Below are positions 1,940 through 63,105 of a stretch of DNA of 64,000 nt, one piece after another. The position numbers were made by a program, and so were the translations under genes. Below the pieces are notes generated by a model. That model worked only from the letters and a program-made list of their open reading frames with translations. It did no database searches and was not told the DNA's origin. The DNA is from Anaeramoeba ignava BMAN (taxonomy: Eukaryota > Protista > Anaeramoebae), in NCBI GenBank assembly GCA_028826165.1, contig JAPDFW010000019.1, positions 14,017 to 78,016 on the forward strand, written 5' to 3'. Every line of letters begins with the position of its first letter. Within the stretch, counting starts at the first letter, position 1.

Positions 1940-3364
1940 ATGAAAACTTATTCAAATTTAGAAAAACTTTCAAATGATTTAAAAAATTTATTTCAAAATC
2001 AAAATCAAAATGAAAAAGAAGAAGAAAGTTATTTTGATTTTGAAATAATTTGTGAACAAAATAAAATTTCATTTAAAACTCATAAATCAATTCTTTCTTC
2101 AAGAAGTTATTATTTTAAATCTCTTTTCAATTCTAAAATGAAAGAATATCAAGAAAATAAATTAATTCTAAAAGATGTTTCAAGTTCAATTCTATTTCCA
2201 ATTTTAAATTATTTTTATTCAGGAAAAATTGAAATTAATTTAGAAAATGCAATAGAAATTTTAATTTTTTCATCAAAATATTTAATTGATGAATTAATTG
2301 AAATTTGTTCAAATTTTATCAAAAACAATTTCCAATTTGAAACTATTGTTGATATTCTTAAATTATCTGAATCAATGGACTTCAATCAATTATTGGATTT
2401 TGCTTATAAATTTATTTTAGAAAATTTTGAAAAATTTATCAAAACTTCATTTTTTCTTGAACTTGAAGAAAATCATTTAAATTCAATTTTATTAAATGAT
2501 TTTATTCCAACAAATGAAATTGAAATTTTTCAATCATTAATAAAATGGGGAAAACATAAATCAAATATTAATCAAGAAAAAGAAGAAAAAGAAAAAATCA
2601 AAAATCAAATTTCCAATATTATTCATAAAATAAGATTTATTGATTTCACAAAAAAAGAACTTGAAAATACTTTGAAAGAAGATTTAATTCCAAATCAAAT
2701 TTCACAAAAATTAATTCAATTCCAAAAATTTCAAGAAGAAAATGAAAAAGAATTAAATCAATTTATTGAAAAAGAAAACTTATCAATTTTCAAATCAAGA
2801 ATTCATTTTAAATCAACAATTATTGAAGAAAAAGAACATTTCAATCTTATAAAAGAATGGATAAATGATAATGAATTTTTTTCCAAAATGAAATTAGGAT
2901 TTTCAACAAAAAAAGAAGGATTTGATTGTAAAAAATGGCATTCCAAATGTGATGATAAAGGAAAAACATTAATTATTATCAAAACCAAAGATAATTTTAT
3001 TTTTGGAGGATTTACTTCAGTTGGATTTAAAAAAGATAAAAGATGGATTTATGATTCAAATTCATTTATTTTTTCATTAAGAAATGATAAAAACGATAGA
3101 AAACCAGAGAAATTTACAATTAAAAAAGGGAAAGAAGATCATGCAATTTATTCACTTTTATCTAATGGCCCAAATTTTGGAGGAGTAAATGTTTATAAAA
3201 GTTCAGATATTTTCTTTAGCTATGATTTAAAACGTGGTTATTCTAAGTTTGGACGTACTTATAACTTGCCTAATGGAATTGAACAAGGCTCAAATCAAGC
3301 CAAATTTTATTTAGCTGGTTCTTCAATATTTGATGTTGATGAACTTGAAACTTTTTTCATTTAA
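1940..3364 (+). CDS. BTB-BACK-TLDc protein (paralog 2), intronless
   Basis: BTB motifs DFEIIC..FKTHKSILSSRSYYFKSLF..MKE and LNYFYSGKI, BACK-like helices (EIEIFQSLIKW), C-terminal TLDc. Confidence 0.92.
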   Translation: MKTYSNLEKLSNDLKNLFQNQNQNEKEEESYFDFEIICEQNKISFKTHKSILSSRSYYFKSLFNSKMKEYQENKLILKDVSSSILFPILNYFYSGKIEINLENAIEILIFSSKYLIDELIEICSNFIKNNFQFETIVDILKLSESMDFNQLLDFAYKFILENFEKFIKTSFFLELEENHLNSILLNDFIPTNEIEIFQSLIKWGKHKSNINQEKEEKEKIKNQISNIIHKIRFIDFTKKELENTLKEDLIPNQISQKLIQFQKFQEENEKELNQFIEKENLSIFKSRIHFKSTIIEEKEHFNLIKEWINDNEFFSKMKLGFSTKKEGFDCKKWHSKCDDKGKTLIIIKTKDNFIFGGFTSVGFKKDKRWIYDSNSFIFSLRNDKNDRKPEKFTIKKGKEDHAIYSLLSNGPNFGGVNVYKSSDIFFSYDLKRGYSKFGRTYNLPNGIEQGSNQAKFYLAGSSIFDVDELETFFI

Positions 3365-12480: not shown

Positions 12481-15400
12481 TTAATTTTGTTTCTTTTGAT
12501 TTTCTTCTTCTTTGATAAGTAAGTCAATAATTGATTTTTCATTTAATTGATAATAATCTTTAAAATCTTCAAATTCTTCAATATTTTGTTCAGTTATTTT
12601 TGTTTCATCAAATTTATCATGATAAAAAAAATAAATTAATTGTTGAATTGTTTCAAATGATTTTTCTGAATAATCATGAACTTGATTAGATGTATCTTGA
12701 ACACTTAATAAAAACATTCCTTTAAATAATTCACTTCTTATGAATAAAATTAATTTATGAACTTTAATTTCTTTTTCTTCAATAATTATTGTAAAATCTT
12801 TTGTTTCATTTTGTTGATATAATTTTCCAAAATCTTCTATTATTCCTTTTCTTCCCTTTTTGGATTCAATCCAATTTGAATCAAATCCAACTTCTTTAAA
12901 TAATTCTGTAACTTTCTTTTCTATTTCATTTAATTTTTCATTTTTCTTTTCATTTTCAAATTTTCTTACTTCCTCTATTTCATTTAATTTCTTATATTCC
13001 TTTTTAAATGTTTCTTTTTGATTTTGATAATTAATTAAATTTTCAAATTTTTGAATCAAATAATCAAAATCACAAAATCCAGTATAAAGGAAATTTAATG
13101 CATATTCAACATCTTCTTTTGGTTTTTTTTTGCAAATATCCATAAATCTTGTTAAAATTGTTTGATTATTATTAAATCTTGTTAAAAGAATTAATTTATG
13201 AACTTTGAATTCAAAATTATCTTTTGTTTGAATTTTAAAATCTGAAAAATTTTCCTCATTTTCTTTTTTTAAAAAATTATTCAAATCTTCATTAAATGAA
13301 TAAATTTTGTAAAATGATTCAATTATTTCTTTTGGAATTAAATTAAATTTCTCATTTAAATCAAAAATATCTGCTCCATTTATCAATAATAATTTGATAT
13401 TTTCAAATGAATATTTATTTCTTCTTTTGATATCTTCTCTTTTTGGAGTCATTGATTGAAAAATTCTAAATGAATATTGATCAATATTTCTAAATGAATC
13501 TTTATCAATATTTTTGCAAATTAAATGTAAAGGAGTTTCATTTTGATTATTTTTTGAATTAATATCTGTTCCTTTTGAAATCATTAATTTAATAATTTCA
13601 AATGAGTATTGATTAATATTTTTTTTGCAAATTAAATGTAAAGGAGTTTCATTTTGATTATTTTTTGAATTGATATCTGCTCCTTTTTCAATCATTAATT
13701 TGATAATTTCAAATGAATATTCATTAATAGTTTTGCAAATTAAATGTAAAGGAGTTTTATTTTGATTATTTTTTGAATTAATATCTGCTCCTTTTTCAAT
13801 CATTAATTTAATAATTTCAAATGAATATTGATTTGAATTGGTGGTAAATTTTTGGAAAATTAATTGGAAAGGGGTTTCATTTTGATTATTTTTTGAATTA
13901 ATATCTGCTCCTTTTTCAATTATTAATTTAATAATTTCAAATGAATCTTTATTAATATTTTTGCAAATTAAATGTAAAGGAGTTTCATTTTGATTATTTT
14001 TTGAATTGATATCTGCTCCTTTTTCAATTATTAATTTGATAATTTGAAATGAATATTCATTAGTATCTATAAATGAATAATTATAAATATTTTGGAAAAT
14101 TAAATGTAAAGGAGTTTCATTTTGATTATTTTTTGAATTGATATCTGCTCCTTTTTCAATCATTAATTTAATAATTTCAAATGAATATTCATTTGAATAA
14201 GTGATAAATTGTTGAAAAATTAAATGTAAAGGAGTTTCTTTTTGATTATTTCTTGAATTAATATCTGCTCCTTTTTCAATCATTAATTTGATAATTTCAA
14301 ATGAATATTGATTATTTTTTGAATTGATATTTGCTTGTTTTCCAATCTTCAAATCATTTTCATATGAATAATAATTAATATTTTTGAAAATTAAATGTAA
14401 AGGAGTTTTATTTTGATTATTTTTTGAATTAATATCTGCTCCTTTTTCAATCAACAATTTGATAATTTCAAATGAATATTGATTATTTTTTGAATTAATA
14501 TCTGCTTTTTTTTCAATCTTCAAATCATTTTCAGATAAACCTTCATCTTTATCTTCATCTTCATCTTCATCTTCATATGCATATTCATACTCATCTTCAT
14601 TTGATTTTGTATTTCTGAGAAATTGTTTCAAAGCAAAATCTATCGGTTTTTGTTGATTTTGATAAGTGAAATTAATATAAAAACCTTTGGAAATCAATAA
14701 TTTGATAATTTTCAAAGAAAATTCACTTGGATTTTTGCAACTTAAAGCCATAGAAACAGGATAAATTTGTGGGAATCTATAATGAATTCTTTTTTTAAAA
14801 TGTTTTTTTTCTTCTCTCATAATGAGAATTTTCATAATTTTAAATGAATATTCAGCTGGATTTTGGAAAGCAAGATCTAAAGGAGTTTTAGAATTCTTAT
14901 TTCTTATATTGATATCTGCTCCTTTTTCAATCATTAATTTAAGAATTTCAAATGAATATTTATTTGGATTTCGGAAAGATAAATGTAAAGGAGTTTCATT
15001 TTGATTATTTTTTGAATTGATATCTGCTCCTTTTTCAATCATTAATTTAATATTTTCAAATGAATATTGATTAATATTTTTGCAAGATAAATATAAAGGA
15101 GTTTCATTTTGATTATTTTTTGAATTAATATCTGCTCCTTTTTCAATCATTAATTTAATAATTTCAAATGAATATTGATTAATATTTTTGCAAGATAAAT
15201 ATAAAGGAGTTTCATTTTGATTATTTTTTGAATTGATATCTGCTCCTTTTTCAATCATGAATTTGATAATTTGAAATGAATATTCATTAATATCTATAAA
15301 TGAATAATAATAAATATTTTGGAAAGATAAATGTAAAGGAGTTTCATTTTTATTATTTTTTGAATTAATATCTGCTCCTTTTTCGATAATTAATTTGATA

Positions 15401-18400
15401 ATTTCAAGTAATAATTGATTAATATCTCCAAATAAATAATAATTAATCTTTTTGCAAGATAAATGTAAAGGAGTTTCATTTTTATTATTTTTTGAATTAA
15501 TATCTGTTCCTTTTGAAATCAATAACTTGATAAATTCAAATGAATATTGATTAATCTTTTTGCAAGATAAATGTAAAGGAGTTTCATTTTTATTATTTTT
15601 TGAATTGATATCTGCTCCTTTTTCAATCATGAATTTAATAATTTCAAATAAATTTTGATTTGGATTTGTGATAAATTTTTGGAAAATTAAATGTAAAGGA
15701 GTTTCATTTTGATTATTTTTTGAATTGATATCTGTTCCTTTTTCAATCAAGAATTTAATAATTTCAAATGAATCTTTATCAATATTTTTGCAAATTAAAT
15801 GTAAAAGAGTTTCATTTTGTTTATTTTTTAAATTGATATCTGCTCCTTTTTCAATCATTAATTTAATAATTTCAAATAAATTTTGATTTGAATTGGTGGT
15901 AAATTTTTGGAAAATTAAATGTAAAAGAGATTCATTTTGATTATTTTTTGAATTGATATCTGTTCCTTTTTCAATCATAAATTTAATAATTTCAAATGAA
16001 TCTTTATTAATATTTTTGCAAATTAAATGTAAAGGAGTTTCATTTTGATTATTTTTTGAATTGATATCTGCTCCTTTTTCAATCAATAATTTGATAATTT
16101 CAAATGAATATTGATTAATATTTTTGCAAGATAAATGTAAAGGAGTTTCATTTTTATTATTTTTTGAATTGATATCTGCTCCTTTTTGAATCATGAATTT
16201 AATAATTTCAAATAAATCTTGATTTGGATTCGTGATAAATTTTTGGAAAATTAAATGTAAAGGAGTTTCATTTTGTTTATTTTTTGAATTGATATCTGCT
16301 CCTTTTTCAATCATGAATTTGATAATTTCAAATGAATCTTTATTAATATTTTTGCAAAATAAATGTAAAGGAGTTTCATTTTGATTATTTTTTGAATTGA
16401 TATCTGCTCCTTTTTGGATCATGAATTTGATAATTTGAAATGAATATTGATTAATATATTTACAAGATAAATGGAAAGGAGTTTCATTTTTATTATTTTT
16501 TGAATTGATATCTGCTCCTTTTTCAATCAATAATTTAATAATTTCAAATAAATTTTGATTTGGATTTGTGATAAATTTTTGGAAAATTAATTGGAAAGGG
16601 GTTTCATTTTGTTTATTTTTTGAATTGATATCTGCTCCTTTTTCAATCATGAATTTAATAATTTCAAATGAATCTTTATCAATATTTTTGCAAATTAAAT
16701 GTAAAAGAGTTTCATTTTGTTTATTTTTTAAATTGATATCTGCTCCTTTTTCAATCATTAATTTAATAATTTCAAATAAATTTTGATTTGAATTGGTGGT
16801 AAATTTTTGGAAAATTAAATGTAAAAGAGATTCATTTTGATTATTTTTTGAATTGATATCTGTTCCTTTTTCAATCATGAATTTAATAATTTCAAATGAA
16901 TCTTTATTAATATTTTTGCAAATTAAATGCAAAGGAGTTTCATTTTTATTATTTTTTGAATTGATATCTGCTCCTTTTTCAATCAATAATTTGATAATTT
17001 CAAATGAATCTTTATCAATATTTTTGCAAGATAAATGTAAAGGAGTTTCATTTTTATTATTTTTTGAATTGATATCTGCTCCTTTTTGGATCATGAATTT
17101 AATAATTTCAAATAAATCTTGATTTAGATTTGTGATAAATTTTTGGAAAACTAATTGGAAAGGGGTTTCATTTTGATTATTTTTTGAATTGATATCTGTT
17201 CCTTTTTCAATCATAAATTTGATAATTTCAAATGAATCTTTATTAATATTTTTGCAAAATAAATGTAAAGGAGTTTCATTTTGATTATTTTTTGAATTGA
17301 TATCTGCTCCTTTTTCAATCTTGAATTTGATAATTTCAAATGAATCTTTATTAATATTTTTGCAAGATAAATGTAAAGGAGTTTCATTTTTATTATTTTT
17401 TGAATTGATATCTGCTCCTTTTTCAATCATGAATTTAATAATTTCAAATGAATCTTTATTAATATTTTTGCAAATTAAATGTAAAGGAGTTTCATTTTGA
17501 TTATTTTTTGAATTGATATCTGCTCCTTTTTCAATCATGAATTTAATAATTTCAAATAAATTTTGATTTGGATTTGTGATAAATTTTTGGAAAACTAATT
17601 GGAAAGGAGTTTCATTTTGATTATTTTTTGAATTGATATCTGCTCCTTTTTGAATCATGAATTTGATAATTTGAAATGAATATTTATTAATATTTTTGCA
17701 AATTAAATGTAAAGGAGTTTCATTTTGATTATTTTTTGAATTGATATCTGCTCCTTTTTCAATCATGAATTTGATAATTTCAAATGAATCTTTATTAATA
17801 TTTTTGCAAAATAAATGTAAAGGAGTTTCATTTTGATTATTTTTTGAATTGATATTTGCTCCTTTTTCAATCATGAATTTGATAATTTCAAATAAATCTT
17901 GATTTAGATTTGTGATAAATTTTTGGAAAACTAATTGGAAAGGAGTTTCATTTTTATTATTTTTTGAATTGATATCTGCTCCTTTTTCAATCAATAATTT
18001 GATAATTTGAAATGAATATTGATTAATATTTTTGCAAAATAAATGTAAAGGAGTTTCATTTTTATTATTTTTTGAATTGATATCTGCTCCTTTTTCAATC
18101 ATGAATTTAATAATTTCAAATAAATCTTGATTTGGATTTGTGATAAATTTTTGGAAAACTAATTGGAAAGGGGTTTCATTTTGATTATTTTTTGAATTGA
18201 TATCTGCTCCTTTTTGAATCATGAATTTGATAATTTCAAATGAATATTTATTAATATTTTTGCAAATTAAATGTAAAGGAGTTTCATTTTGATTATTTTT
18301 TGAATTGATATCTGCTCCTTTTTCAATCAATAATTTGATAATTCCAAATGAGTATTGATTTGGATAGCCACAGCTTAGAAATAAAATAGTTGTATGCTTC

Positions 18401-19149
18401 GAAGAAAGATTGTTAGTGTAAATTGATCCATGTTCCTTTTGATTATTTGATGAGTTCAGAAAATATCCTTGTTGAATGATAAATTTGAGAATCTCAAATG
18501 AATTTTTATTTATATTCTGGAAACCCAAATGTAAAGGAGTTTCATTTTGATTATTTTTTGAATTAATATCTGCTCCTTTTTCAATCAAGAATTTGATAAT
18601 TTCAAATGAATTTTTATTTATATTCTGGAAACCCAAATGTAAAGGAGTTTCATTTTGATTATTTTTTGAATTGATATCTGCTCCTTTTACAATCATGAAT
18701 TTGATAATTTCAAATGAATATTGATTAATATTTTTGCAAATTAAATGTAAAGGAGTTTCATTTTGATTATTTTTTGAATTGATATTTGCTCCTTTTTCAA
18801 TCAATAATTTGATAATTTCAAATGAATTGTTATCAATATTTTTGCAAATTAAATATAAAGGAGTTTCATTTTGATTATTTCTTGAATTGATATTTGCTCC
18901 TTTTTCAATCAATTTTTTGATAATTTTAATCGAGTTTTCGTTTGTGTTTGTGCAAATTGTGAACAAATCATTTTTGTTCATCTTATCATTTCTTGTTTTT
19001 TTTTCGTTATATTGATTTTGATTTAGATATTGATTTCGATTTAGATATTGATTTAGATATTGATTCTGATATTGATTTCGATATTGATTTGTATATTGAT
19101 TTGTATATTGATTTAAAGTTTCATTTGAATTTGGTTGTAGATTTTGCAT
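12481..19149 (-). CDS. Giant ankyrin-repeat protein with two C-terminal BTB/POZ domains, intronless
   Basis: Roughly 50 repeats of EIIKxMIEKGADINSKNNQNETPLHL. BTB motifs FSDFKI..FKVHKLILLTR and DFTIII..IKVHKLILFIRSELFKGMF. Confidence 0.92.
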   Translation of the reverse strand: MQNLQPNSNETLNQYTNQYTNQYRNQYQNQYLNQYLNRNQYLNQNQYNEKKTRNDKMNKNDLFTICTNTNENSIKIIKKLIEKGANINSRNNQNETPLYLICKNIDNNSFEIIKLLIEKGANINSKNNQNETPLHLICKNINQYSFEIIKFMIVKGADINSKNNQNETPLHLGFQNINKNSFEIIKFLIEKGADINSKNNQNETPLHLGFQNINKNSFEILKFIIQQGYFLNSSNNQKEHGSIYTNNLSSKHTTILFLSCGYPNQYSFGIIKLLIEKGADINSKNNQNETPLHLICKNINKYSFEIIKFMIQKGADINSKNNQNETPFQLVFQKFITNPNQDLFEIIKFMIEKGADINSKNNKNETPLHLFCKNINQYSFQIIKLLIEKGADINSKNNKNETPFQLVFQKFITNLNQDLFEIIKFMIEKGANINSKNNQNETPLHLFCKNINKDSFEIIKFMIEKGADINSKNNQNETPLHLICKNINKYSFQIIKFMIQKGADINSKNNQNETPFQLVFQKFITNPNQNLFEIIKFMIEKGADINSKNNQNETPLHLICKNINKDSFEIIKFMIEKGADINSKNNKNETPLHLSCKNINKDSFEIIKFKIEKGADINSKNNQNETPLHLFCKNINKDSFEIIKFMIEKGTDINSKNNQNETPFQLVFQKFITNLNQDLFEIIKFMIQKGADINSKNNKNETPLHLSCKNIDKDSFEIIKLLIEKGADINSKNNKNETPLHLICKNINKDSFEIIKFMIEKGTDINSKNNQNESLLHLIFQKFTTNSNQNLFEIIKLMIEKGADINLKNKQNETLLHLICKNIDKDSFEIIKFMIEKGADINSKNKQNETPFQLIFQKFITNPNQNLFEIIKLLIEKGADINSKNNKNETPFHLSCKYINQYSFQIIKFMIQKGADINSKNNQNETPLHLFCKNINKDSFEIIKFMIEKGADINSKNKQNETPLHLIFQKFITNPNQDLFEIIKFMIQKGADINSKNNKNETPLHLSCKNINQYSFEIIKLLIEKGADINSKNNQNETPLHLICKNINKDSFEIIKFMIEKGTDINSKNNQNESLLHLIFQKFTTNSNQNLFEIIKLMIEKGADINLKNKQNETLLHLICKNIDKDSFEIIKFLIEKGTDINSKNNQNETPLHLIFQKFITNPNQNLFEIIKFMIEKGADINSKNNKNETPLHLSCKKINQYSFEFIKLLISKGTDINSKNNKNETPLHLSCKKINYYLFGDINQLLLEIIKLIIEKGADINSKNNKNETPLHLSFQNIYYYSFIDINEYSFQIIKFMIEKGADINSKNNQNETPLYLSCKNINQYSFEIIKLMIEKGADINSKNNQNETPLYLSCKNINQYSFENIKLMIEKGADINSKNNQNETPLHLSFRNPNKYSFEILKLMIEKGADINIRNKNSKTPLDLAFQNPAEYSFKIMKILIMREEKKHFKKRIHYRFPQIYPVSMALSCKNPSEFSLKIIKLLISKGFYINFTYQNQQKPIDFALKQFLRNTKSNEDEYEYAYEDEDEDEDKDEGLSENDLKIEKKADINSKNNQYSFEIIKLLIEKGADINSKNNQNKTPLHLIFKNINYYSYENDLKIGKQANINSKNNQYSFEIIKLMIEKGADINSRNNQKETPLHLIFQQFITYSNEYSFEIIKLMIEKGADINSKNNQNETPLHLIFQNIYNYSFIDTNEYSFQIIKLIIEKGADINSKNNQNETPLHLICKNINKDSFEIIKLIIEKGADINSKNNQNETPFQLIFQKFTTNSNQYSFEIIKLMIEKGADINSKNNQNKTPLHLICKTINEYSFEIIKLMIEKGADINSKNNQNETPLHLICKKNINQYSFEIIKLMISKGTDINSKNNQNETPLHLICKNIDKDSFRNIDQYSFRIFQSMTPKREDIKRRNKYSFENIKLLLINGADIFDLNEKFNLIPKEIIESFYKIYSFNEDLNNFLKKENEENFSDFKIQTKDNFEFKVHKLILLTRFNNNQTILTRFMDICKKKPKEDVEYALNFLYTGFCDFDYLIQKFENLINYQNQKETFKKEYKKLNEIEEVRKFENEKKNEKLNEIEKKVTELFKEVGFDSNWIESKKGRKGIIEDFGKLYQQNETKDFTIIIEEKEIKVHKLILFIRSELFKGMFLLSVQDTSNQVHDYSEKSFETIQQLIYFFYHDKFDETKITEQNIEEFEDFKDYYQLNEKSIIDLLIKEEENQKKQN

Positions 19150-19329
19150 TTTTTGTGTTTGTTTGTTTTGTTTTTTATTAAAATAAAAAATTAAAAAATG
19201 AAAAATGAAAAATGTTTTTTGTTTGTTTTTTGTTTAAAAATTTAATTGAAAAAAGTGGATAGTTTTGTTTTTTATTTTTATTTTTCCTTTTTTTATTTAA
19301 TTTTTTCTCCTTTTTTTCTTCTCCTTTTT

Positions 19330-33494: not shown

Positions 33495-36400
33495 ATGAAA
33501 AAGTAAAAATAAAAATTAAAATTAAAATTATAAATAAAAATTAAAATTAAAATTATAAAAAAAGAATTAGTTTGATTTGTATTTTAATAATCTTAGTTAC
33601 TTTTAAAGAAATTAATTCTCAATACGTGGTTGATAAAATAAATGGAATTGACACAGGAGATTGCACTTCACAACCATGCAAAACAATAGGACGGGCAGTT
33701 TCCTTAGCAGTAGATGGGTCTGATATAACAATATATGCCACAGGAATATATTCAGATGACGGAGATTGCGGACTAGTTGTGAACCAAACAACTTTAATGA
33801 TACAAGGAAATGATGGACAAAATTTTCCAGTTGTGGATTGCAAATCCAAAGCGACTTGGCTAAGCACAACCGCGTACAACACAAAACTCGAAGTTATGAA
33901 GATGGTGGTTCAAAACGCGGTTCTTGATATTGATGCTGTGACAAGTGAAGCAGCAGGCGCTTTTATCACGACAAACAACTCGAACGTCCATTTATCTCAA
34001 TGCAGTTTTCTTAATGGAGATGTTGTTGGTGCTAACGGAAGCGAAAATTCGTCTTTTACCAGCGGAATATACATCGAAAATTCGCTTGAAATTTCCTTAG
34101 TTGAGGTCGATTTCATAAATAACGGAAAAAGCAAAAATATTCACAATTCTGCCGGTGCCGGAATTTTGAGATATTCGGGACAATCCATTTCCGGCGCAAT
34201 TTTTGCCATTCGATATTGCAATGTGGAAAATAATTCTGGTGATACTGGCGGTTTTTATGTTGATGCTCTTTATTCAATCCCGAATTTCAATCTCGAAATA
34301 ATAAAAACCCAATTTGTAAACAATTCGGGCGTTTTATATGGAGGAATGTTTTTCAGTCAAAATAATGGAGATGTCAATGTGTCGCATGTTCTTGAAGGAA
34401 ATCTTTTTGAAAACAACAGTGGTGTGAATGTCGGTGGTTTTGCGTTTGCAGAGTCGGATGTTTCCACAAACATGACTGCGGGACTGACAGATAACAAATT
34501 TGTCAGCAATTCGGGACGAAATCAAGCGGGAGGACTGTCATATTTTTCAGGGAAAATTGACGGTTGCAACATGACATTGACACGGAATAACTTCACTGCC
34601 AACCAAGGACGAACAGGTGGCGTTGGCATGCGGGTGTATCTGCCTGACAAAGAAAAAGCGAACCAACTTGGGATGAATTTGAATTTTTGGATCGAGAACA
34701 ACGGCGAAAACGGCGGAGGTTTGCTCATCAAAGCGCCGTTCCAAGTTGTTTCGCTTTCTAATATGTTTCAAGAAAACACAGCCGTTCAAGGTGGAGCAAT
34801 TTGCCTTCAAGACTCGGTTTCTTTCGAAGACTTTAGCAGCCAGTTCTGGCTTAATAACGCCGAATTGGGCGCTTCTATTCTTGACGTTTCTGGCGGTTAC
34901 ACCTCGCTGCAACTGTCGTATTTGTTTGTTTCTGACAATTATTATCCTAACGTTTTCTTCATCAATAGTAGCACTGTCACTTTTGGCAGTCTCAGCGCAA
35001 CATGTCCAAACGGAAGCAACTTTCTGCCTGACTTTAGCAGCTCGCGATTGACTTACCAATGCGAGCCTTGTGCTGCAGGAACATTTTCGACAGTCAGAGG
35101 AACAATGCTGAATAATGTCACATGTTTCGAGTGTCCGCAACGTGCCGCATGTTTTGGAGGATCTGACGTTTACATCGAGTTTGGATTTTGGGCCCAATCA
35201 CTGCAAAACGGCGACATTGACATATATGAATGTCCGGTAGATTATTGTTTGCCGGGAAATCTAAACACTTTACAATTACCAAAACAAGGGGAATGCACAA
35301 ATAATCGGACAGGGCTTATCTGCACAGAGTGCGCAGCGGGATTTACAGAGACGCTTCTGCCGAACAGTAATTGCGCGGCGGTTTCTGAGTGCAAGAACCA
35401 GGTGTGGCAGTATGTGCTCCTTTTGCTTCCGAAGGTGTTTCTTCTCGTTTGGGCGTTTATGTACGTGCCTCACGCATCAACACCGCATTTCCACATCGTC
35501 GTGCATTTCGTGCAAGTGCTTTCATTAGTGCTTCCTGCTCCAGGTCCTCGTGCTGACGATTTTTTCTGGAGCGTTGTTTGGTCAGTTATCCAACTTTTCG
35601 ATCTTCAAACAGCTCTTCCCATTTTCCGCAACTTCGGTGCCTGTCCAGCAGCCTCAATGACAGGTCTCAAAAAGATATTCATGCAGTTCGTCGGTCCTCT
35701 TGTTTTTTTTGGCACGCTTCTGCCTCTTTATATTTTCGCCTTCATCAGAAAATGTGCCCAAACAGCGGAAAGTGATGAGATTTCCGGTGAGGAGAGTTCA
35801 GATTCCCAAGTTCCCCAGAGATCTCGAAGGAAGAAAGTCCCAGACGAGATTGAGCTTTCGAGCGAGGACAACATCTCCGACAAAGATAGTGATCTCCAAG
35901 AGCATAACGGTTCGCCAAGCAAGATCGGGACTGTCAAAAAAATCAAAACTCCCGATTTCGATGGTGATCTTGTCTCAATTCAATGGCACTCAGCACAAGC
36001 AGATCTTCTCCCAGACTCCCAACAAAGCGCCCCTGATAATGCTCCCCAAAATGCAATTGGCGAAGACCCTCTTAATCCCCTTTCGAACGATCAAGACCCC
36101 TCAGAAATTTCAGAGACTTTTTTGGATCGCGATGACATCCGCAACTTGGGTCTTGATCAGCTTGATATCTCCGACAGCTCCGAACTCTACGATGCAGCAG
36201 AAAAACGAGGGAAGACTTCTGCAGTAATATTGCCTGCAAATCTCACTTTGATTAAACGCTTGAATCTTGCGTTTTGGACTGTTTTTCTTCTTGCCTATTT
36301 TGTGCTTGTCAAAACGTCATTCGATTTAGTCAGTTGCATTTCCATAAATGTCGACAACAACTACGAGCTTCGGCTCTACAGAGATGCTTCTGTGAAATGC

Positions 36401-36943
36401 TACTCAGCATGGCAAATTGTGTTTTTTGTGATTTTGGGCATTCTTCTTTTCGTTCCGTTTATCCTTTTGATCTCACTTACGCGATCAAGCCGACCCAAAG
36501 TTAACGGTACAACAGTCCTGTCTCTGCTCTATGAACCTTTTCTCCCTTCACATTACTACTACGCTCCCTTGTCTCTCTTTGTACGTTTCTGTCTCGTTGC
36601 CGTTGCTGTGCTGATCACAAACTCGGCAGTTCGAACCTTTGTTATTTCCCTATTTTGCGTACTTTTTCTTTCCTTTAATCTTCTAACTCGTCCCTTTGTC
36701 TCTTCTTACGCTAACTGGCTGAACACAGCCACTCTTTCTGTCCTTTGTCTTGCTGCTGGGCTTGGCATGATCCATGCTTCTTGGCAATTCAGTGGTTTGA
36801 TGCCGTATCTTGGCCCAATCAAAAATTATGGTTATGGTCTTGATTATTCAATTTTGTCATTATGTTCAGCTCTTTTTCTTTATTTTCTTTTTAGGTATGT
36901 TCGCCTCTTTGCCAGACATCGCCATTGTTTCGGTTGTAAGTAA
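33495..36943 (+). CDS. Surface protein: signal peptide, right-handed beta-helix (pectin-lyase-like, GGA/FxxN repeats), Cys-rich domain, multi-pass TM region
   Basis: An 8-nt first exon (33495-33502) and intron 33503-33570 give MKNLICILIILVTF. Motifs G.D..DC...PCKTI, FENNSG..GG, FQENTAVQGGAI, CEPCAAGTFS, C..NRTGLICTEC. Many hydrophobic helices in the C-terminal half. Confidence 0.78.
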
Positions 36944-51604: not shown

Positions 51605-53035
51605 ATGGATAATAATAATAATAACCAAATTCAAAATGCAAATCAAAATGAAAATGAAAATGAAAATGAAAAGAAAAATTTAGAAAAAAAAGTAACAAAA
51701 AATTTAATTAAAAATTATTCAAACCTTTTAAATGGAAATTCATTTAAAGATTTTTCAATTTTTGTTGAGAATAAATCAAATCCTTTTGAAATTAAAGTTC
51801 ATAAATCAATTTTATCTTCAAGATCTCCTTTTTTTAATGAATCATTAAGGCAAGAATCTCTTTTTATTTCTTTAAATCAATTTAATAAAAAAGAAATGGA
51901 ATCAATTTTGAGTTATATTTATTATGGAAATATTTCTTTTGAGAATCAAGAAAATCTTATCCAATTATTGGAAATTTCAATTTATTTTAAATTAAATTTA
52001 TTGAAAGAAATTATTCAAAAAAAAATTTCAAATTCAATTAATTATTCAAATTTTTTCCAATTTTTATTCCAAAATCGAAATTTAAATTCAAATGAAATTG
52101 AAATAAAATGTTTTGAATTAATAAATCAAAATTTTTCCCAAATTCAAAATAATGAGAATTTATTCAATTTAACTAAAGAAGAAATTATCAAATTTATTCA
52201 ATTTAAACAAGAAAAAAAAGAAATTTTTCAATTTGATTTTTTTCAATTTTTAAATAATTGGATTGAAAAAAGAGTTAATTCATTAAAATTAAGGAAATAT
52301 AAGAACAAAATGAATGAAAAGAAAAGATTATTTCATTCTTTTTTTTCATTATTTGATAAAGATTCAATTTCAAAACAAGATTTTGATAAATTAAAACAAT
52401 TTGATTTTTTTCTTCCCAAATTCTTTTTTAATTCATTTTGAAAGAACTATTTTTCAAATTCAAGATCAAGAAAATCAAACAAAAATCAAAGAAAATGAAA
52501 AGAAAATTAAATCAAAAGATCAAAAGATTAAGTCCTTTGAATTGGAAAATCAAAACAAAAACAAGAGGTTACCAAATGAGCAGAAAGGGAAAGAGTTGGA
52601 TAAGAAAGAAAAAGATATTCAAAATCTAAAATCTGAAAATGAAAAGAAAGAAGTTGAAAAGAAATAAGAAAAAAAAGAAAAGAAAATCAAAAAGAGGAAA
52701 TTCAAAATATTAAATCATTATTTCAGAAAGAAAAAAATCAAAGGAAAGAAAAAGATCTGAAATCGGATAATGAAAAGCAAAAGAAAAAGAAAATCAAAGG
52801 AAAGATAAGATTCTCAAACAAAAAAGATATTCTTAAAAATCAGAGAGAAATTGAAAAAAAAATCAAAAATCAAAAATGAAAATAAAAAGAAAAAGAAAAT
52901 GAAAAGAAAGTGAATCTGATAAAAACAAAACCAAATCAAAAACAAAATCTAAACCAAATCAAAATAAAAGAAAATTGAAAAATCTGATAAAAACAAAACG
53001 AAAACGAAAATCAAAAAATCAAAAAAATTCAAATA

Positions 53036-53067
<32 letters not shown>

Positions 53068-56000
53068 ATCTGATAAAAAAACAAAACCAAATCAAAAACC
53101 AAATCAAAAACCAAATCAAAAACCAAATCAAAAACCAAATCAAAATCAAAATCAAAACCAAATCAAAAAAAATTTTTCCTCAATTTTCAGATTCAGAAAT
53201 TATTAAACAAAAAGAATATATTTATAGATTAAAAAAATGGATAAATGATAATGATTTTTTTTCTAAAATGAAAAAAGGATTTTCAGCAAAAAGAGATGGA
53301 TTTAATTCTAAAAATTGGCATAAAGTAGTTGATGGTAAAGGAAAAACATTAGTTATTATCAAAACAAAAGATAATTTTATTTTTGGAGGTTTTACTCAAG
53401 TTGGATGGACAAATGATAAATCAAAATGGAAAGAAAAAGATACAAAATATAATTATGGATTTATTAATGATCCAAATGCATTTATTTTTTCATTAAGAAA
53501 TGATAAAGGAGATAGAAAACCAGAAAAGTTTACAATTAAAAAAGGTCAAGAAAAATATGCAATTTATTATGATTCAAAAGATGGTCCAAGTTTTGGAGGA
53601 TGTAAATATAAATAATTTATATTTAATAAATATTTATTATTAAAATTAAAATTAAATTAATAAATAATCCAAAATATTAATATAATAAATAATATTATTA
53701 TTTCAATTTAAAATTAAATTTAAATTAAATTATTATTAATTATTATTAAAATTAATTATTTATTTTTATTAAAATAGGGAGTAAATAATTTATATTTAAT
53801 AAATATTTATTATTATAATTAAAATTAAATTAATAAATAATCCAAAATATTAATATAATAAATAATATTATTATTTCAATTTAAAATAAAATTAATTTTA
53901 AATTAAATTATTATTAATTATTATTAAAATTAATTATTTATCTTTATTAAAATAGTTAGTAAATAATTTATGATTAATAAATATTTATTATTATAATTAA
54001 AATTAAATTAATAAATAATCCAAAATATTAATATAATAAATAATATTATTATTTTAAATTTAAAATAAAATTAATTTAAAATTAAATTATTATTAATTAT
54101 TATTAAAATTAATTATTTATCTTTATTAAAATAGATGGTAAATAATTTATATTTAATAAATATTTATTATTATAATTAAAATTAAATTAATAAATAATCC
54201 AAAAATATTAATATAATAAATAATATTATTATTTCAATTTAAAATAAAATTAATTTTAAATTAAATTATTATTAATTATTATTAAAATTAATTATTTATA
54301 TTTATTAAAATAGCTGGTAAATAATTTATATTTAATAAATATTTATTATTATAATTAAAATTAAATTAATAAATAATCCAAAATATTAATATAATAAATA
54401 ATATTATTATTATTTCAATTTAAAATAAAATTAATTTTAAATTAAATTATTATTAATTATTATTAAAATTAATTATTTATCTTTATTAAAATAGTTAGTA
54501 AATAATTTATGATTTAATAAATATTTATTATTATAATTAAAATTAAATTAATAAATAATTCAAAATATCAATATAATAAATAATATTATTATTTCAATTT
54601 AAAATAAAATTAATTTTAAATTAAATTATTATTAATTATTATTAAAATTAATTATTTATCTTTATTAAAATAGTTTGTAAATAATTTATATTTAATAAAT
54701 ATTTATTATTATAATTAAAATTAAATTAATAAATAATTCAAAATATTAATATAATAAATAATATTATTATTTCAATTTAAAATAAAATTAATTTTAAATT
54801 AAATTATTATTAATTATTATTAAAATTAATTATTTATCTTTATTAAAATAGCTTGTAAATAATTTATATTTAATAAATATTTATTATTATAATTAAAATT
54901 AAATTAATAAATAATCCAAAATATTAATATAATAAATAATATTATTATTTCAATTTAAAATAAAATTAATTTTAAATTAAATTATTATTAATTATTATTA
55001 AAATTAATTATTTATATTTATTAAAATAGTTTGTAAATAATTTATATTTAATAAATATTTATTATTATAATTAAAATTAAATTAATAAATAATCCAAAAT
55101 ATTAATATAATAAATAATATTATTATTTCAATTTAAAATAAAATTAATTTTAAATTAAATTATTATTAATTATTATTAAAATTAATTATTTATCTTTATT
55201 AAAATAGTTCGTAAATAATTTATATTTAATAAATATTTATTATTATAATTAAAATTAAATTAATAAATAATTCAAAATATTAATATAATAAATAATATTA
55301 TTATTTCAATTTAAAATAAAATTAATTTTAAATTAAATTATTATTAAAATTAATTATTTATATTTATTAAAATATGCAAATAATTTATATTTAATAAATA
55401 TTTATTATTATTATAATTAAATTAAATTATTATTAATTATTATTAAAATAATTATTTATTTTATAAAATATTTAAAATAATTTTTTTAAAAATTATTTAT
55501 TATAATTAAAATTAAATTAATAAATAATCTAAAATATTAATATAATAAATAATATTATTATTTTAATTTAAAATAAAATTAATTTTAAATTAAATTATTA
55601 TTAATTATTATTAAAATTAATTATTTATCTTTATTAAAATAGAGGTTAAATAATTTATATTTAATAAATATTTATTATTATAATTAAAATTAAATTAATA
55701 AATAATTCAAAATATCAATATAATAAATAATATTATTATTTCAATTTAAAATAAAATTAATTTTAAATTAAATTATTATTAATTATTATTAAAATTAATT
55801 ATTTATATTTATTAAAATAGCTTGGTAAATAATTTATATTTAATAAATATTTATTATTATAATTAAAATTAAATTAATAAATAATCTAAAATATTAATAT
55901 AATAAATAATATTATTATTTCAATTTAAAATAAAATTAATTTTAAATTAAATTATTATTAATTATTATTAAAATTAATTATTTATCTTTATTAAAATAGA

Positions 56001-57553
56001 TAGTAAATAATTTATATTTAATAAATATTTATTATTTATAATTAAAATTAAATTAATAAATAATCCAAAATATCAATATAATAAATAATATTATTATTTT
56101 AATTTAAAATAAAATTAATTTTAAATTAAATTATTATTAATTATTATTAAAATTAATTATTTATCTTTATTAAAATAGGTTGTAAATAATTTATATTTAA
56201 TAAATATTTATTATTATAATTAAAATTAAATTAATAAATAATTCAAAATATTAATATAATAAATGATATTATTATTTTAAATTTAAAATAAAATTAATTT
56301 TAAATTAAATTATTATTAATTATTATTAAAATTAATTATTTATCTTTATTAAAATAGATAGTAAATAATTTATATTTAATAAATATTTATTATTATAATT
56401 AAAATTAAATTAATAAATAATTCAAAATATTAATATAATAAATAATATTATTATTTTAATTTAAAATAAAATTAATTTTAAATTTAAATTATTATTAATT
56501 ATTATTAAAATTAATTATTTATCTTTATTAAAATAGGTTGTAAATAATTTATATTTAATAAATATTTATTATTATAATTAAAATTAAATTAATAAATAAT
56601 TCAAAATATTAATATAATAAATGATATTATTATTTAAATTTAAAATAAAATTAATTTTTAAATTAAATTATTATTAATTATTATTAAAATTAATTATTTA
56701 TCTTTATTAAAATAGATGGTAAATAATTTATATTTAATAAATATTTATTATTATAATTAAAATTAAATTAATAAATAATTCAAAATATTAATATAATAAA
56801 TATTATTATTATTTCAATTTAAAATAAAATAAATTTTAAATTAAATTATTATTAATTATTATTAAAATTAATTATTTATCTTTATTAAAAATAGGTTGTA
56901 AATAATTTATATTTAATAAATATTTATTATTATAATTAAAATTAAATTAATAAATAATTCAAAATATTAATATAATAAATGATATTATTATTTAAATTTA
57001 AAATAAAATTAATTTTAAATTAAATTATTATTAATTATTATTAAAATTAATTATTTATATTTATTAAAATAGCTTGTAAATAATTTAAATTTAAAATAAA
57101 AATTAATTTTAAATTAATAAATAATTCAAAATATTAATATAATAAATGATATTATTATTTAAATTTAAAATAAAATTAATATTAAATTAAATTATTATTA
57201 ATTATTATTAAAATTAATTATTTATATTTATTAAAATAGCTGGTAAATAATTTATATCTAATAAATAATCCAAAATATTAATATAATAAATAATATTATT
57301 ATTTAAATTTAAAATAAAATAAATTTAAAATTAAATTATTATTAATTATTATTAAAATTAATTATTTATCTTTATTAAAATATTTATAGGTGATATTGAG
57401 TTAGATTCTAAATTACAATCTGGTAAATCAAATTTTGGTAAAAGTTATAATCTACCCAATGGAATTACTTATGGAACAGATGAAGCTAAAAGTTATTTAG
57501 CTGGTTCTTTTGATAAATGGGTTGTTGATGAACTTGAGACTTATTTCATTTAA
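51605..57553 (+). CDS. BTB-coiled-coil-TLDc protein (paralog 3) whose TLDc domain is split by an intron/micro-exon array; upstream frameshifts are errors or decay
   Basis: BTB in 51605..52441 (DFSIFV..IKVHKSILSSRSPFF). TLDc in 53040..53601 ending GPSFGG. Final exon 57390-57553 encodes (x)DIELDSKLQSGKSNFGKSYNLPNGITYGTDEAKSYLAGSFDKWVVDELETYFI*, collinear with paralogs 1 and 2. Frameshifts at about 52420 and 52660-53040. Confidence 0.8.
53602..57389 (+). repeat. Tandem array of ~176-nt near-identical GT-AG introns separated by variable 3-nt micro-exons
   Basis: Junctions read TTTATTAAAATAG-NNN-GTAAATAATTTA every ~179 bp. There are 17 clean 3-nt inserts, one of 2 nt, one of 4 nt and two degenerate junctions. 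Confidence 0.9.
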
Positions 57554-58047: not shown

Positions 58048-58176
58048 GTTTGTTCACAGAACGGTTTTTTGTTCACAGAACAGTTTTTTGTTCACAGAAC
58101 GATATTTGTTCACTGAACAAACTAGGTTCACTGAACAAACTAGGTTCACTGAACAAACTAGGTTCACTGAACAAAC
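58048..58176. repeat. Tandem 18-19-bp repeats each with inverted core GTTC-AC(A/T)-GAAC
   Basis: TTTGTTCACAGAAC x3, then GTTCACTGAACAAACT x4. Confidence 0.85.
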
Positions 58177-58317
58177 TGAAAGGATTCAACAAGAAAAAAT
58201 AAAGAAAAAAAAATAAGAAAGTTTGTTGGTTTAGAAAAAAGAGACTTTGAAAAAAAAAAAGAAAAAAAAAAAAAAAAAAAAAGAAAAAAAAGAAAAAAGA
58301 ATTCCAAAAAGAAATGA

Positions 58318-61059: not shown

Positions 61060-63105
61060 AAAAAATATATTATTATTTTAATAACAGAAAATTGAAATAT
61101 TAAATTATATTTTGAGGAAATTAATTTATAAATTAAAATATTATCGTGCCCAAATTCTAGACTCTAGTTTTTATATTTATTCATTTTAAAATATTTGAAT
61201 ATTTCAAAAATTTTTAAATTTGAAATGGTTTATTATTTTAAAAAAACAAATTAAGAAAAATTAAGAAAAATATTTTTAGGGGAAATTAATTTATTTTTCA
61301 AATAAAATTAAATTAAATCTATTCTGATTTTTATAAGAGATATATGTTAAATATTTAAATAATAAAAAAATATTTAAATCTCAAAAACAATAAATTATTA
61401 TTTCTGAAAGGAATTAAATTTTGAATATTAAATTATATTTTGAAACTAATTTATAAATTAAATATTAAATTAAATCTATTCTCATTTTTATATTTATATG
61501 TTAAATATTTAAATAATAAAAAATATTTAAATCTAAAACATTAAATTATTATTTTAAACATAAAATTGAATATTAAATTATATTTAGAAATAATTTATAA
61601 ATTAAATATTAAATTAAAATCTATTCTCATTTTTATATTTATATGTTTAATATTTAAATAATAAAATAATTAAATCAAAAACAATAAATTATTATTTTAA
61701 AACATAAAATTGAATATTAAATTATATTTTTAAATTAATTTTATAAAATTAAATATTAAATTCAAATCTATTTCATTTTTATTTTATATATGTTAAATAT
61801 TTAAATAATAAAATATTTTAAAATTAAAAACACAAATTTCATTTTAAACATAAAATTAAATATTAAAATTATATTTAAATAATTTTATAAATTAAATATT
61901 AAAATTAAATCTATTTTCATTTTTTATTTTTTTATATGTTAAAATATTTAAAATATTTAAAATCTAAAAACAATTAAAATTATTATTTCCAAAATCATAA
62001 AAATTTGAATAAATTATTATATTTAAAATTGATTTTAAATTAAATATTAGATTAAATATTCTATTTTTAATAGTGTTAGTATTTTAAATTGATTTTTAAA
62101 TTTAAATATTAGAATCAAATTATATTTTTAAATTTTTGGAGAACTTGATTTACAAATCTGTGCTTTTAAATGTTTTCTGATATAAAAATGAATTTAAATA
62201 AAACATATTAAAACGAAAAAATTAACTCCATTATTTTAACAAATAAAATTTAAAATTAAATTAGCATTTTGAAATAATTTATAAACTGAATATTAAATTA
62301 AATCTTATTCTTTTTATTTTTATATGCAAAAATATTTTAAATAATGTAAAATATTTTAAAATCTAAAACATTAAAATTCATTATTTTAATAATAATAATA
62401 AAAATATAAATATTAAATTAGATCAAATTGAATTTGTAAAATTAAATAATAAATCAAAATTTATTTTCATTTTTATATTTACATATGTTAAATATTTTAA
62501 AATAATGAAAAAATATTTTAAACAAAACAATAAAAATTTCAATAATAGAATTAAATTTTTGAGCATTTTCAAATAAAATGAAATTAAATTTAAAAATTAT
62601 ATTTTTCTTTTTAAACATTTTAAAATAATGAATGAATCTTTCAACTCATTATCTCATTTTTATACGCCTTTATTTTTAAAAATATTTGAAATAAAATAAA
62701 ATATTTTTTGTTTAAATCTTTAAAAACAATAAATATGAAACAACAAACTGATATTTAATAACAAAATCAAATATTAAATTATATTTTTAAATTGACGAAA
62801 ACTGAATATTAAATTTAATGGATCCATTATACTTTTATGTTAAATATTTAAAGAATAAAATATTTGAATCTAAAAACAATAAATTCATTATCTTAAATAA
62901 TAAAACAAATCATATTTTTAAACACCTATATTTTTGAAATAATAGATAAATTCTGATATTTAACCCATTCTTTTTATATTTATATGTTAAATATTTAAAT
63001 AACAAAAATAATTGAAAATATAAAAATAAATTATTATTTTAAAAACATAAAATTAAATACAAATTATATTTGAATATTTATAATTAAACATTAAATTAAA
63101 CTTAT
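61060..63105. repeat. Degenerate ~140-150-bp AT-rich satellite
   Basis: TATATGTTAAATATTTAAATAATAAAA..TCTAAAACAATAAATTATTATTTT..ATATTAAATTATATTTT recurs at about 61342, 61495, 61640, 61788, 61933 and onward. A partial copy sits at 57850-57958. Confidence 0.75.

Follow-up and report, generated by a model that had tools for sequence, protein, structure and literature searches.

A 64,000-nucleotide stretch of the Anaeramoeba ignava BMAN genome (contig JAPDFW010000019.1, positions 14,017 to 78,016 of the forward strand; hereafter the window, numbered from its first letter) was analysed around a tandem array that splits the TLDc domain of a BTB–TLDc gene. The array is probably a minisatellite of intron-plus-3-nt units, the triplets of which are retained in the mRNA as one-codon micro-exons and build a loop of the TLDc domain. 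This reading draws on indirect evidence, namely the anatomy of the array, its recurrence at one intron position across a gene family, the retention of its internal splice sites and a triplet composition that follows the reading frame.

Anatomy and distribution of the array

The host gene comprises three parts: a BTB domain, a linker rich in lysine and glutamate (K/E-rich) and the TLDc domain that is split by the array. Tandem Repeats Finder (TRF) was run on the array and returned a period of 178-179 with 94-95% matches and ~10 copies in each of two blocks. The copies of the one unit lay head to tail, as in a tandem repeat or minisatellite. A typical unit was ~178 nt long and ended in ...TTATTAAAATAG; three bases followed, and the next unit restarted with GTAAATAATTT. 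Junctions within the array therefore took the form AAAATAG-NNN-GTAAAT, and 17 of the enclosed pieces were clean 3-nt pieces flanked by AAAATAG and GTAAAT. The array, its pieces in order and the exons on either side are given below; all micro-exons were read from the junction sequence.

53178..53601, plus strand, TLDc exon before the array (Pfam PF07534, 59.2 bits, profile positions 2-121 of 170)
53602..57389, plus strand, tandem array, ~21 units (167-181 nt) that each comprise an intron and 3 nt (TRF; unit boundaries)
53778..53780, plus strand, micro-exon 1, GGA (AAAATAG-GGA-GTAAAT)
53956..53958, plus strand, micro-exon 2, TTA
54135..54137, plus strand, micro-exon 3, ATG
54314..54316, plus strand, micro-exon 4, CTG
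54495..54497, plus strand, micro-exon 5, TTA
54674..54676, plus strand, micro-exon 6, TTT
54852..54854, plus strand, micro-exon 7, CTT
55030..55032, plus strand, micro-exon 8, TTT
55208..55210, plus strand, micro-exon 9, TTC
55211..55642, plus strand, longer intron of 432 nt with two decayed junctions that have neither AG nor GT (remnants near 55362 and 55460)
55643..55644, plus strand, 2-nt piece AG, acceptor intact, donor shifted to GTTAAAT (sequence)
55821..55824, plus strand, 4-nt piece CTTG (junction sequence)
56000..56002, plus strand, micro-exon 12, ATA
56179..56181, plus strand, micro-exon 13, GTT
56358..56360, plus strand, micro-exon 14, ATA
56537..56539, plus strand, micro-exon 15, GTT
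56716..56718, plus strand, micro-exon 16, ATG
56895..56897, plus strand, micro-exon 17, GTT
57073..57075, plus strand, micro-exon 18, CTT
57240..57242, plus strand, micro-exon 19, CTG
57390..57553, plus strand, last TLDc exon, in which GT completes the split codon and is followed by DIELDSKLQSGKSNFG...ETYFI and a TAA stop (tblastn with paralogues; sequence)

The exon before the array ended in GGT CCA AGT TTT GGA GGA T, which encodes GPSFGG and leaves one base, and the intron is therefore in phase 1. The first donor started at 53602. At 19 window junctions the pieces were directly flanked by a canonical acceptor (AG preceded by an A/T-rich tract) and the donor GTAAAT; the final acceptor was AAAATATTTATAG, differing from the internal AAAATAG. 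The last exon opened with GT GAT ATT at 57390 and its TAA stop ended at 57553. The 2-nt and 4-nt pieces summed to 6 nt, which preserved the reading frame, and with every piece included the window copy read GPSFGG-WINAVISFFQLDSYSYGSSG-DIELDS. An earlier reading of this DNA, made without database searches (the sequence-only reading), had listed the 17 clean triplets exactly and had overlooked the 2-nt piece, the 4-nt piece and the two decayed junctions.

The A. ignava genome was searched with the unit by BLAST, giving at least 863 matches of 97-99% identity on many contigs. A strict junction pattern returned 242 matches, against 0 in the control. Twenty-four arrays were retrieved and flanking exons were locatable in 22 of them (partial arrays L011 and L012 were without flanks). 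All 22 flanked arrays lay at one phase-1 intron, between the GPxFG(G) and D[IF]xL motifs of TLDc. Their host genes spanned the BTB-coiled-coil and BTB-BACK subfamilies of a BTB–TLDc family of more than 300 members, and the arrays varied between paralogues in unit number and in triplets. In intronless paralogues the same site held a loop of 1-21 residues (mode 3), bounded by invariant G410/F413/G414 and D423. This loop was the only lower-confidence block in an otherwise confident model of the TLDc structure. An intronless paralogue matched the solved TLDc chains 4acj_A and 7u8o_U.

Variation within the unit was concentrated in the triplet. Entropy among 16 aligned window units was 1.92 bits at triplet position 1 and 1.55 bits at position 3, and 3-4 of ~176 intron columns varied. 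The comparison of triplet and intronic variability that had been proposed with the sequence-only reading was carried out on 137 units from at least 20 arrays. Diversity at triplet positions 1, 2 and 3 was 0.655, 0.287 and 0.686 respectively, against an intron median of 0.014, and positions 1 and 3 thus lay far above the intron sites. This concentration of diversity places the pattern far from chance. The only other variable columns were the four C positions of the unit (diversity 0.26-0.59). Approximately 80% of unit pairs that were identical at all 175 background columns still differed at triplet positions 1 and 3. A search for unit lineages, in which triplets would be linked to variants of the flanking intron, detected none. 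Nor were the variable sites linked to each other, even where two C's were adjacent, a result that indicates repeated change at G/C sites and not a few old unit lineages.

Splice sites, reading frame and the probable inclusion of the triplets

Splice-site retention was assessed in a census of 214 internal junctions that was not conditioned on splice sites. AG was kept in 209 of these, GT in 205 and both in 204. By comparison, the C site 13 nt upstream was changed in 104 of 255 units (~41%; Fisher p ~1e-26). Since AG and GT were retained beside the most variable bases of the unit while G/C sites changed, the G's of the splice sites appear to be protected. In diverged arrays, the introns of which are reduced to 66-166 nt, AG-3 nt-GT was kept at 16 of 16 junctions. 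Donor-only losses (n=5) were all found within arrays bearing other defects. A. ignava introns have a mode of 76 nt, and the longest annotated intron is 4168 bp (PMC11550330 supplement); the latter is probably one of these arrays. As every unit carries full splice signals and introns in this genome are short, each unit is likely to be spliced separately.

Pieces were 3 nt long in 190 of 204 cases genome-wide and 2, 4 or 5 nt in the other 14 (~7%). The 190 pieces of 3 nt agree with the symmetric exons, in multiples of three, of systems such as the micro-exon genes (MEGs) considered below. With all pieces included, 15 of the 22 arrays had an open reading frame.

For comparison, the ankyrin genes of this genome were examined. 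Loci were found by pattern, using two consecutive TTTAG-NNN-GTAART sites (12 loci, against 0 in the control). All 12 (L037-L048, on contigs C27, C60, C73, C79, C83, C86, C93, C96, C112, C126, C131 and C141) were ankyrin genes in which each phase-0 exon encodes a single repeat. Between the ankyrin repeats lay one or two single-codon (3-nt) micro-exons, mostly GAT and AAA; the introns were dissimilar, hence no minisatellite was present. When exons alone were counted, the distance between the G of GAD and the T of TPLH was 8-11 in 26 of 26 intervals and never the canonical 12. When AG-NNN-GT triplets were also counted, the spacing was exactly 12 in 16 of the 26 intervals, with 4 more restored by eye. 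The triplets thus restore ankyrin spacing, and the spliceosome therefore appears to use 3-nt exons with the same signals.

These phase-0 micro-exons also provided the check in another phase that had been suggested earlier, and the T-rich position was shifted to the third base. The third base was G-free, and the middle base was A in 21 of 26. Compared by codon position, TLDc and ankyrin micro-exons were similar in composition (p=0.2 and 0.09); compared by triplet position, they were strongly different (p=3e-27). Composition therefore follows the reading frame and not the distance from the splice site.

The sequence data thus show how the arrays are built, how they are distributed over the genome, that their splice sites are conserved and that their composition depends on frame; that the triplets enter the mRNA and are translated is inferred, as is any selection on the encoded residues. 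In the proposed mechanism, each repeat unit would consist of one entire short intron together with three bases of exon, and would have been multiplied at a single phase-1 intron through tandem duplication or unequal crossing-over. This intron interrupts a hypervariable surface loop of TLDc (GPxFG to D[IF]xL). Splicing would remove the intron of each unit separately and leave its 3 nt in the mRNA, which would add one codon per unit. Phase 1 would place the middle base at the wobble position, with an ancestral T mostly kept in a young family; triplet positions 1 and 3, as codon positions 2 and 1, would be free to vary. The arrays would act as an evolvable, germline-encoded generator of loop length and loop sequence.

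A number of observations weigh against inclusion of the triplets. All public models of array genes either excise the entire array as one intron or end within it. Protein database searches, which returned only NCBI genome models and a lone EukProt protein, gave no transcript-derived protein of any array gene (the EukProt protein, P0110, maps to an intronless gene and is uninformative on arrays). With every piece included, 7 of 22 arrays were frameshifted or stopped. Two of the 8 arrays with odd-length pieces stayed in frame, which is chance level, and odd-length pieces were commoner than the intron indel rate predicts. The encoded residues were Asp- and Tyr-rich (e.g. DYYDYDSLSYDGYDILG in L016) whereas natural loops are Gly-rich, and the resemblance between the two was weak (r=0.16). 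Diversity at triplet positions 1 and 3 was of the same order as at the four C sites, and decay of ancestral G/C (e.g. from GTG) could explain much of it without protein selection. In the window, the frame of the K/E-rich linker is broken as assembled (shift near 52405-52420, stop at 52665); the breaks could mean that this gene copy is a pseudogene, or could stem from homopolymer errors in the assembly.

All 4-nt pieces (TTTG, ATTG, CTTG, CTTT, ATTC, AATC, GGGA and TTTA; in L014, L015, L017, L018, L021, L025, L029, L031 and at 55821 in the window) resembled two common triplets overlapped by two bases. Odd-length pieces may be consensus or polishing artefacts, such as would be expected at the sole sites where a near-identical repeat varies. 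Arrays in intact genes were compared for cleaner pieces and no difference was seen. Compensation of frame between pieces (2+4 nt in the window, 4+5 nt in L015) was considered and rejected, being at chance level overall and leaving L015 with a stop.

Part of this evidence also favours an alternative, considered unlikely here, in which the array is a purely intronic minisatellite that is removed whole or stepwise, its triplets never entering the mRNA. The public models, which skip the arrays and give a loop of one split codon, would then be right, and triplet variation would be neutral G/C decay in an AT-biased genome. Variability at the remaining G/C sites of the unit comes close to that of positions 1 and 3, odd-length pieces and stop-creating contexts occur without depletion, and GTG, with which the last exon also starts, is the first triplet in two arrays. 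Such an array would nevertheless have kept internal AG and GT in 96-98% of junctions despite G sites beside hypervariable bases, and bypassing of 19 good acceptors over 3.8 kb is unlikely given the 76-nt intron mode. Its middle triplet position varies more than any intronic A/T column, and positions 1 and 3 carry both G and C, whereas the C sites decay to A/T only. Ankyrin genes in this genome apparently require 3-nt exons that bear the same signals, and triplet composition tracks the reading frame; both observations favour micro-exons over intronic sequence.

The N-T-N pattern and stop codons

The sequence-only reading had proposed that the micro-exons follow an N-T-N rule that makes every combination of exons stop-free. 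Its observations in the window were confirmed: T was the middle base in 16 of 17 clean triplets, all four bases occurred at positions 1 and 3, and 13 of these 34 positions were G/C. The phase-1 arithmetic was also correct. Each codon is shared between two exons and ends in the middle T, its identity is set by the two neighbouring exons, and a pure N-T-N array is stop-free in any order. For the window, in which 17 of 17 clean triplets were stop-free, the rule stood; genome-wide it proved to be a tendency. The middle base was T in 156 of 190 triplets (82%), G in 26 and A in 8. Sixteen of the 190 3-nt exons (~8%) start with AA or AG (AGA, AAT, AAG, AAC and AGT) and give TAG or TAA after a T-ending exon. 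One array opens with T followed by AGA, creating TAG. A stop-free NNT library across the genome is contradicted by these exons.

Conservation of the middle T was compared with that of intronic A/T sites, as had been proposed, and was 82% against ~99%, with no extra constraint visible. Behind T, stop-prone exons showed no significant depletion (4 of 18, with 35% expected; p=0.19, odd-length pieces included). Wobble A accounted for 4% of TLDc triplets (8/190), 35% of ankyrin micro-exons (9/26) and ~45% of ordinary coding sequence; this deficit is the one observation that still fits the idea of stop avoidance.

These results bear on a quite unlikely alternative in which the triplets are combinatorial cassettes, spliced in many combinations, with the middle T selected for stop-free NNT joins. 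The arithmetic of N-T-N arrays and the striking rarity of wobble A agree with it, as do the safety of GGA, the commonest exception, in every context, and the position of the arrays in the loop predicted as most likely to bind targets. The stop-capable exons, their undiminished frequency after T and the array opening with TAG do not, and neutral intronic A/T sites are better conserved than the middle T. Descent of a young family from a single T-bearing unit accounts for the A deficit with no need of selection, and the micro-exons of the ankyrin genes must be constitutive. It is likewise rather improbable that, in BTB–TLDc genes and perhaps ankyrin–BTB genes too, stochastic or regulated inclusion of subsets of the 3-nt cassettes lets single genes yield a repertoire of loops at the RNA level, diversifying ubiquitin-ligase adapters in a protist, with N-T-N maintained by selection so that all joins stay readable. 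The selection for arbitrary recombinability suggested earlier is unsupported, as stop-prone and odd-length exons exist and the middle T is the less conserved. For a repeat family that is young and AT-biased, an ancestral T at the wobble site suffices to explain N-T-N. In the simplest reading, the middle T represents the wobble base of codons that are split between exons, and a stop-avoidance rule is unproven.

Mobile intron copies (introners or transposons), with the triplets as target-site duplications or filler, would account for units that are 97-99% identical across loci in host TLDc exons of 63-80% identity at the protein level, but this very improbable explanation is largely refuted: every retrieved array with locatable flanks lay at the same homologous site with units head to tail, only 28 of 173 adjacent triplet pairs matched, with 16 expected by chance, so that the triplets are no target-site duplications, and no terminal inverted repeat was found beyond shuffles (end complementarity score 13, equal to the shuffle mean of 13).

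Related systems, host gene and neighbouring sequences

The MEGs of Schistosoma have very short symmetric exons (3-81 bp; 10.1101/2023.06.21.545858) in multiples of three. They share with the array short symmetric exons whose skipping keeps the frame, and they too are a proposed generator of protein variation. MEG exons are mutually unrelated, their introns are long and dissimilar, and a whole secreted protein is built from them. The TLDc array, in contrast, concerns one loop of a folded domain, with as many as 20 or more putative 3-nt exons, near-identical introns of ~178 nt in tandem and codons split in phase 1. Spliceosomes can include exons of 3 or even 1 nt, which annotation pipelines routinely miss (PMC8831610, PMC12940212, PMC11162997). 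Isolated micro-exons of 1-3 nt (plants, fungi, animal RPS24) are single and conserved, and are not tandem arrays co-amplified with introns.

In tandem exon-plus-intron cassettes (repeat-protein genes, Dscam-type clusters), exon and intron are duplicated together, phase is symmetric and copy number is variable. The array shares this mode of duplication, but its exon is a single split codon and not a domain or repeat. Ratchet points of recursive splicing consist of AG followed immediately by GT, with a zero-length exon. The internal splice sites of the array, within an annotated long intron, would similarly permit stepwise removal. Identity with ratchet points was rejected, as the 3 nt between AG and GT would stay in the mRNA. 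GT directly followed AG only with the triplets GTT, GTG and GTA (14 of 190).

MATH-BTB adapters of nematodes and plants are adaptively evolving families of BTB substrate adapters. The BTB–TLDc family resembles them in its huge lineage-specific expansion, conserved BTB and rapidly diverging, presumed substrate-binding domain; it differs in that the variable domain is TLDc, with a loop that would be partly encoded by a micro-exon minisatellite. The AAY codons of diversity-generating retroelements (DGRs), to which the N-T-N pattern had been likened, are also a codon design without stops under diversification. The array has neither reverse transcriptase nor a pair of template and variable repeats nor A-specific mutagenesis, and the likeness is an analogy only.

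In the literature, no paper linking Anaeramoeba with micro-exons was found (genome papers give general intron statistics only), nor was any description of tandem 3-nt-exon arrays with near-identical introns. If the triplets are spliced in, they would represent a route to build and rapidly evolve a protein binding loop for which no earlier description was found. Each repeat would add one codon, and unequal crossing-over would alter loop length and sequence without ever breaking the frame. The spliceosome would be able to process 20 consecutive 3-nt exons. Models of hundreds of Anaeramoeba genes (TLDc and ankyrin) would miss residues at the most variable positions, which are predicted to be probably ligand-contacting.

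The window is strongly AT-rich (17% G+C). Upstream of the TLDc exon, the host gene comprised the following parts.

51605..52441, plus strand, open reading frame (ORF) of the BTB/POZ domain (Pfam PF00651, E=3e-13)
52400..53177, plus strand, K/E-rich linker (ORF list and tblastn with paralogues P0122-P0156)

The BTB/POZ match to the PF00651 profile scored 50.4 bits against a cut-off of 20.5, which places the ORF in the BTB family, and its identity to type-I paralogues was 90-94%. The exon before the array exceeded the TLDc cut-off (24.5 bits) with its 59.2 bits and belongs to PF07534.

The terminal splice sites of the array, namely the first donor GTAAATATAAAT (53602-53618) and the last acceptor AAAATATTTATAG (57375-57389), each carried ~6 extra bases relative to internal junctions. 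These extra bases were complementary to each other (TATAAAT / ATTTATA) and would form a weak, A/U-only pairing, which could be due to chance or could favour joining of the two terminal sites. Approximately 500 bp downstream of the gene, 58049-58177 held a 19-nt unit, TTTGTTCACAGAACAGTTT (3.8 copies, 88% matches), and a perfect 18-nt repeat, GTTCACTGAACAAACTAG (3.9 copies).

Two intronless BTB-BACK-TLDc paralogues were present in the window, at 1940-3364 and 287-1024. They carried a 7-residue loop at the array site, VNVYKSS and VNVYKSH respectively. The loop DNA of both read GGA GGA GTA AAT..., with a donor-like GTAAAT in frame.

A 144-bp tandem repeat with TGTTTTAGATTTAAATATTTTATTATTTAAATATTTAAC was located at 61285-62069 and recurred beside many BTB–TLDc genes; it lay upstream of paralogues in L014, L017, L019, L020, L025, L026 and L029-L031. 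It may be a promoter-associated satellite that was co-duplicated with the gene. Another tandem repeat, of ~168-171 nt, was found downstream of family genes in L011, L030 (4387-4897 and 6807-7479) and L032 (4171-5011). Its first ~35 nt correspond to the 3' end of the intron unit (…ATTATTAAAATTAATTATTTATCTTTATTAAAATAT) and are followed by TTATTCCAC; the ~35 nt in common point to shared ancestry of satellite and intron unit.

A 1123-codon ORF at 33572-36943 formed an island of 44% G+C inside the 17% G+C window. It gave a weak Pfam match only (DUF7630, below cut-off) and could be foreign or otherwise unusual DNA. On the minus strand, 12484-19233 held a single 2250-codon ankyrin ORF with a 36-residue period and a BTB-like match near 12628-12984; this ORF is intronless, unlike the split ankyrin genes elsewhere in the genome.

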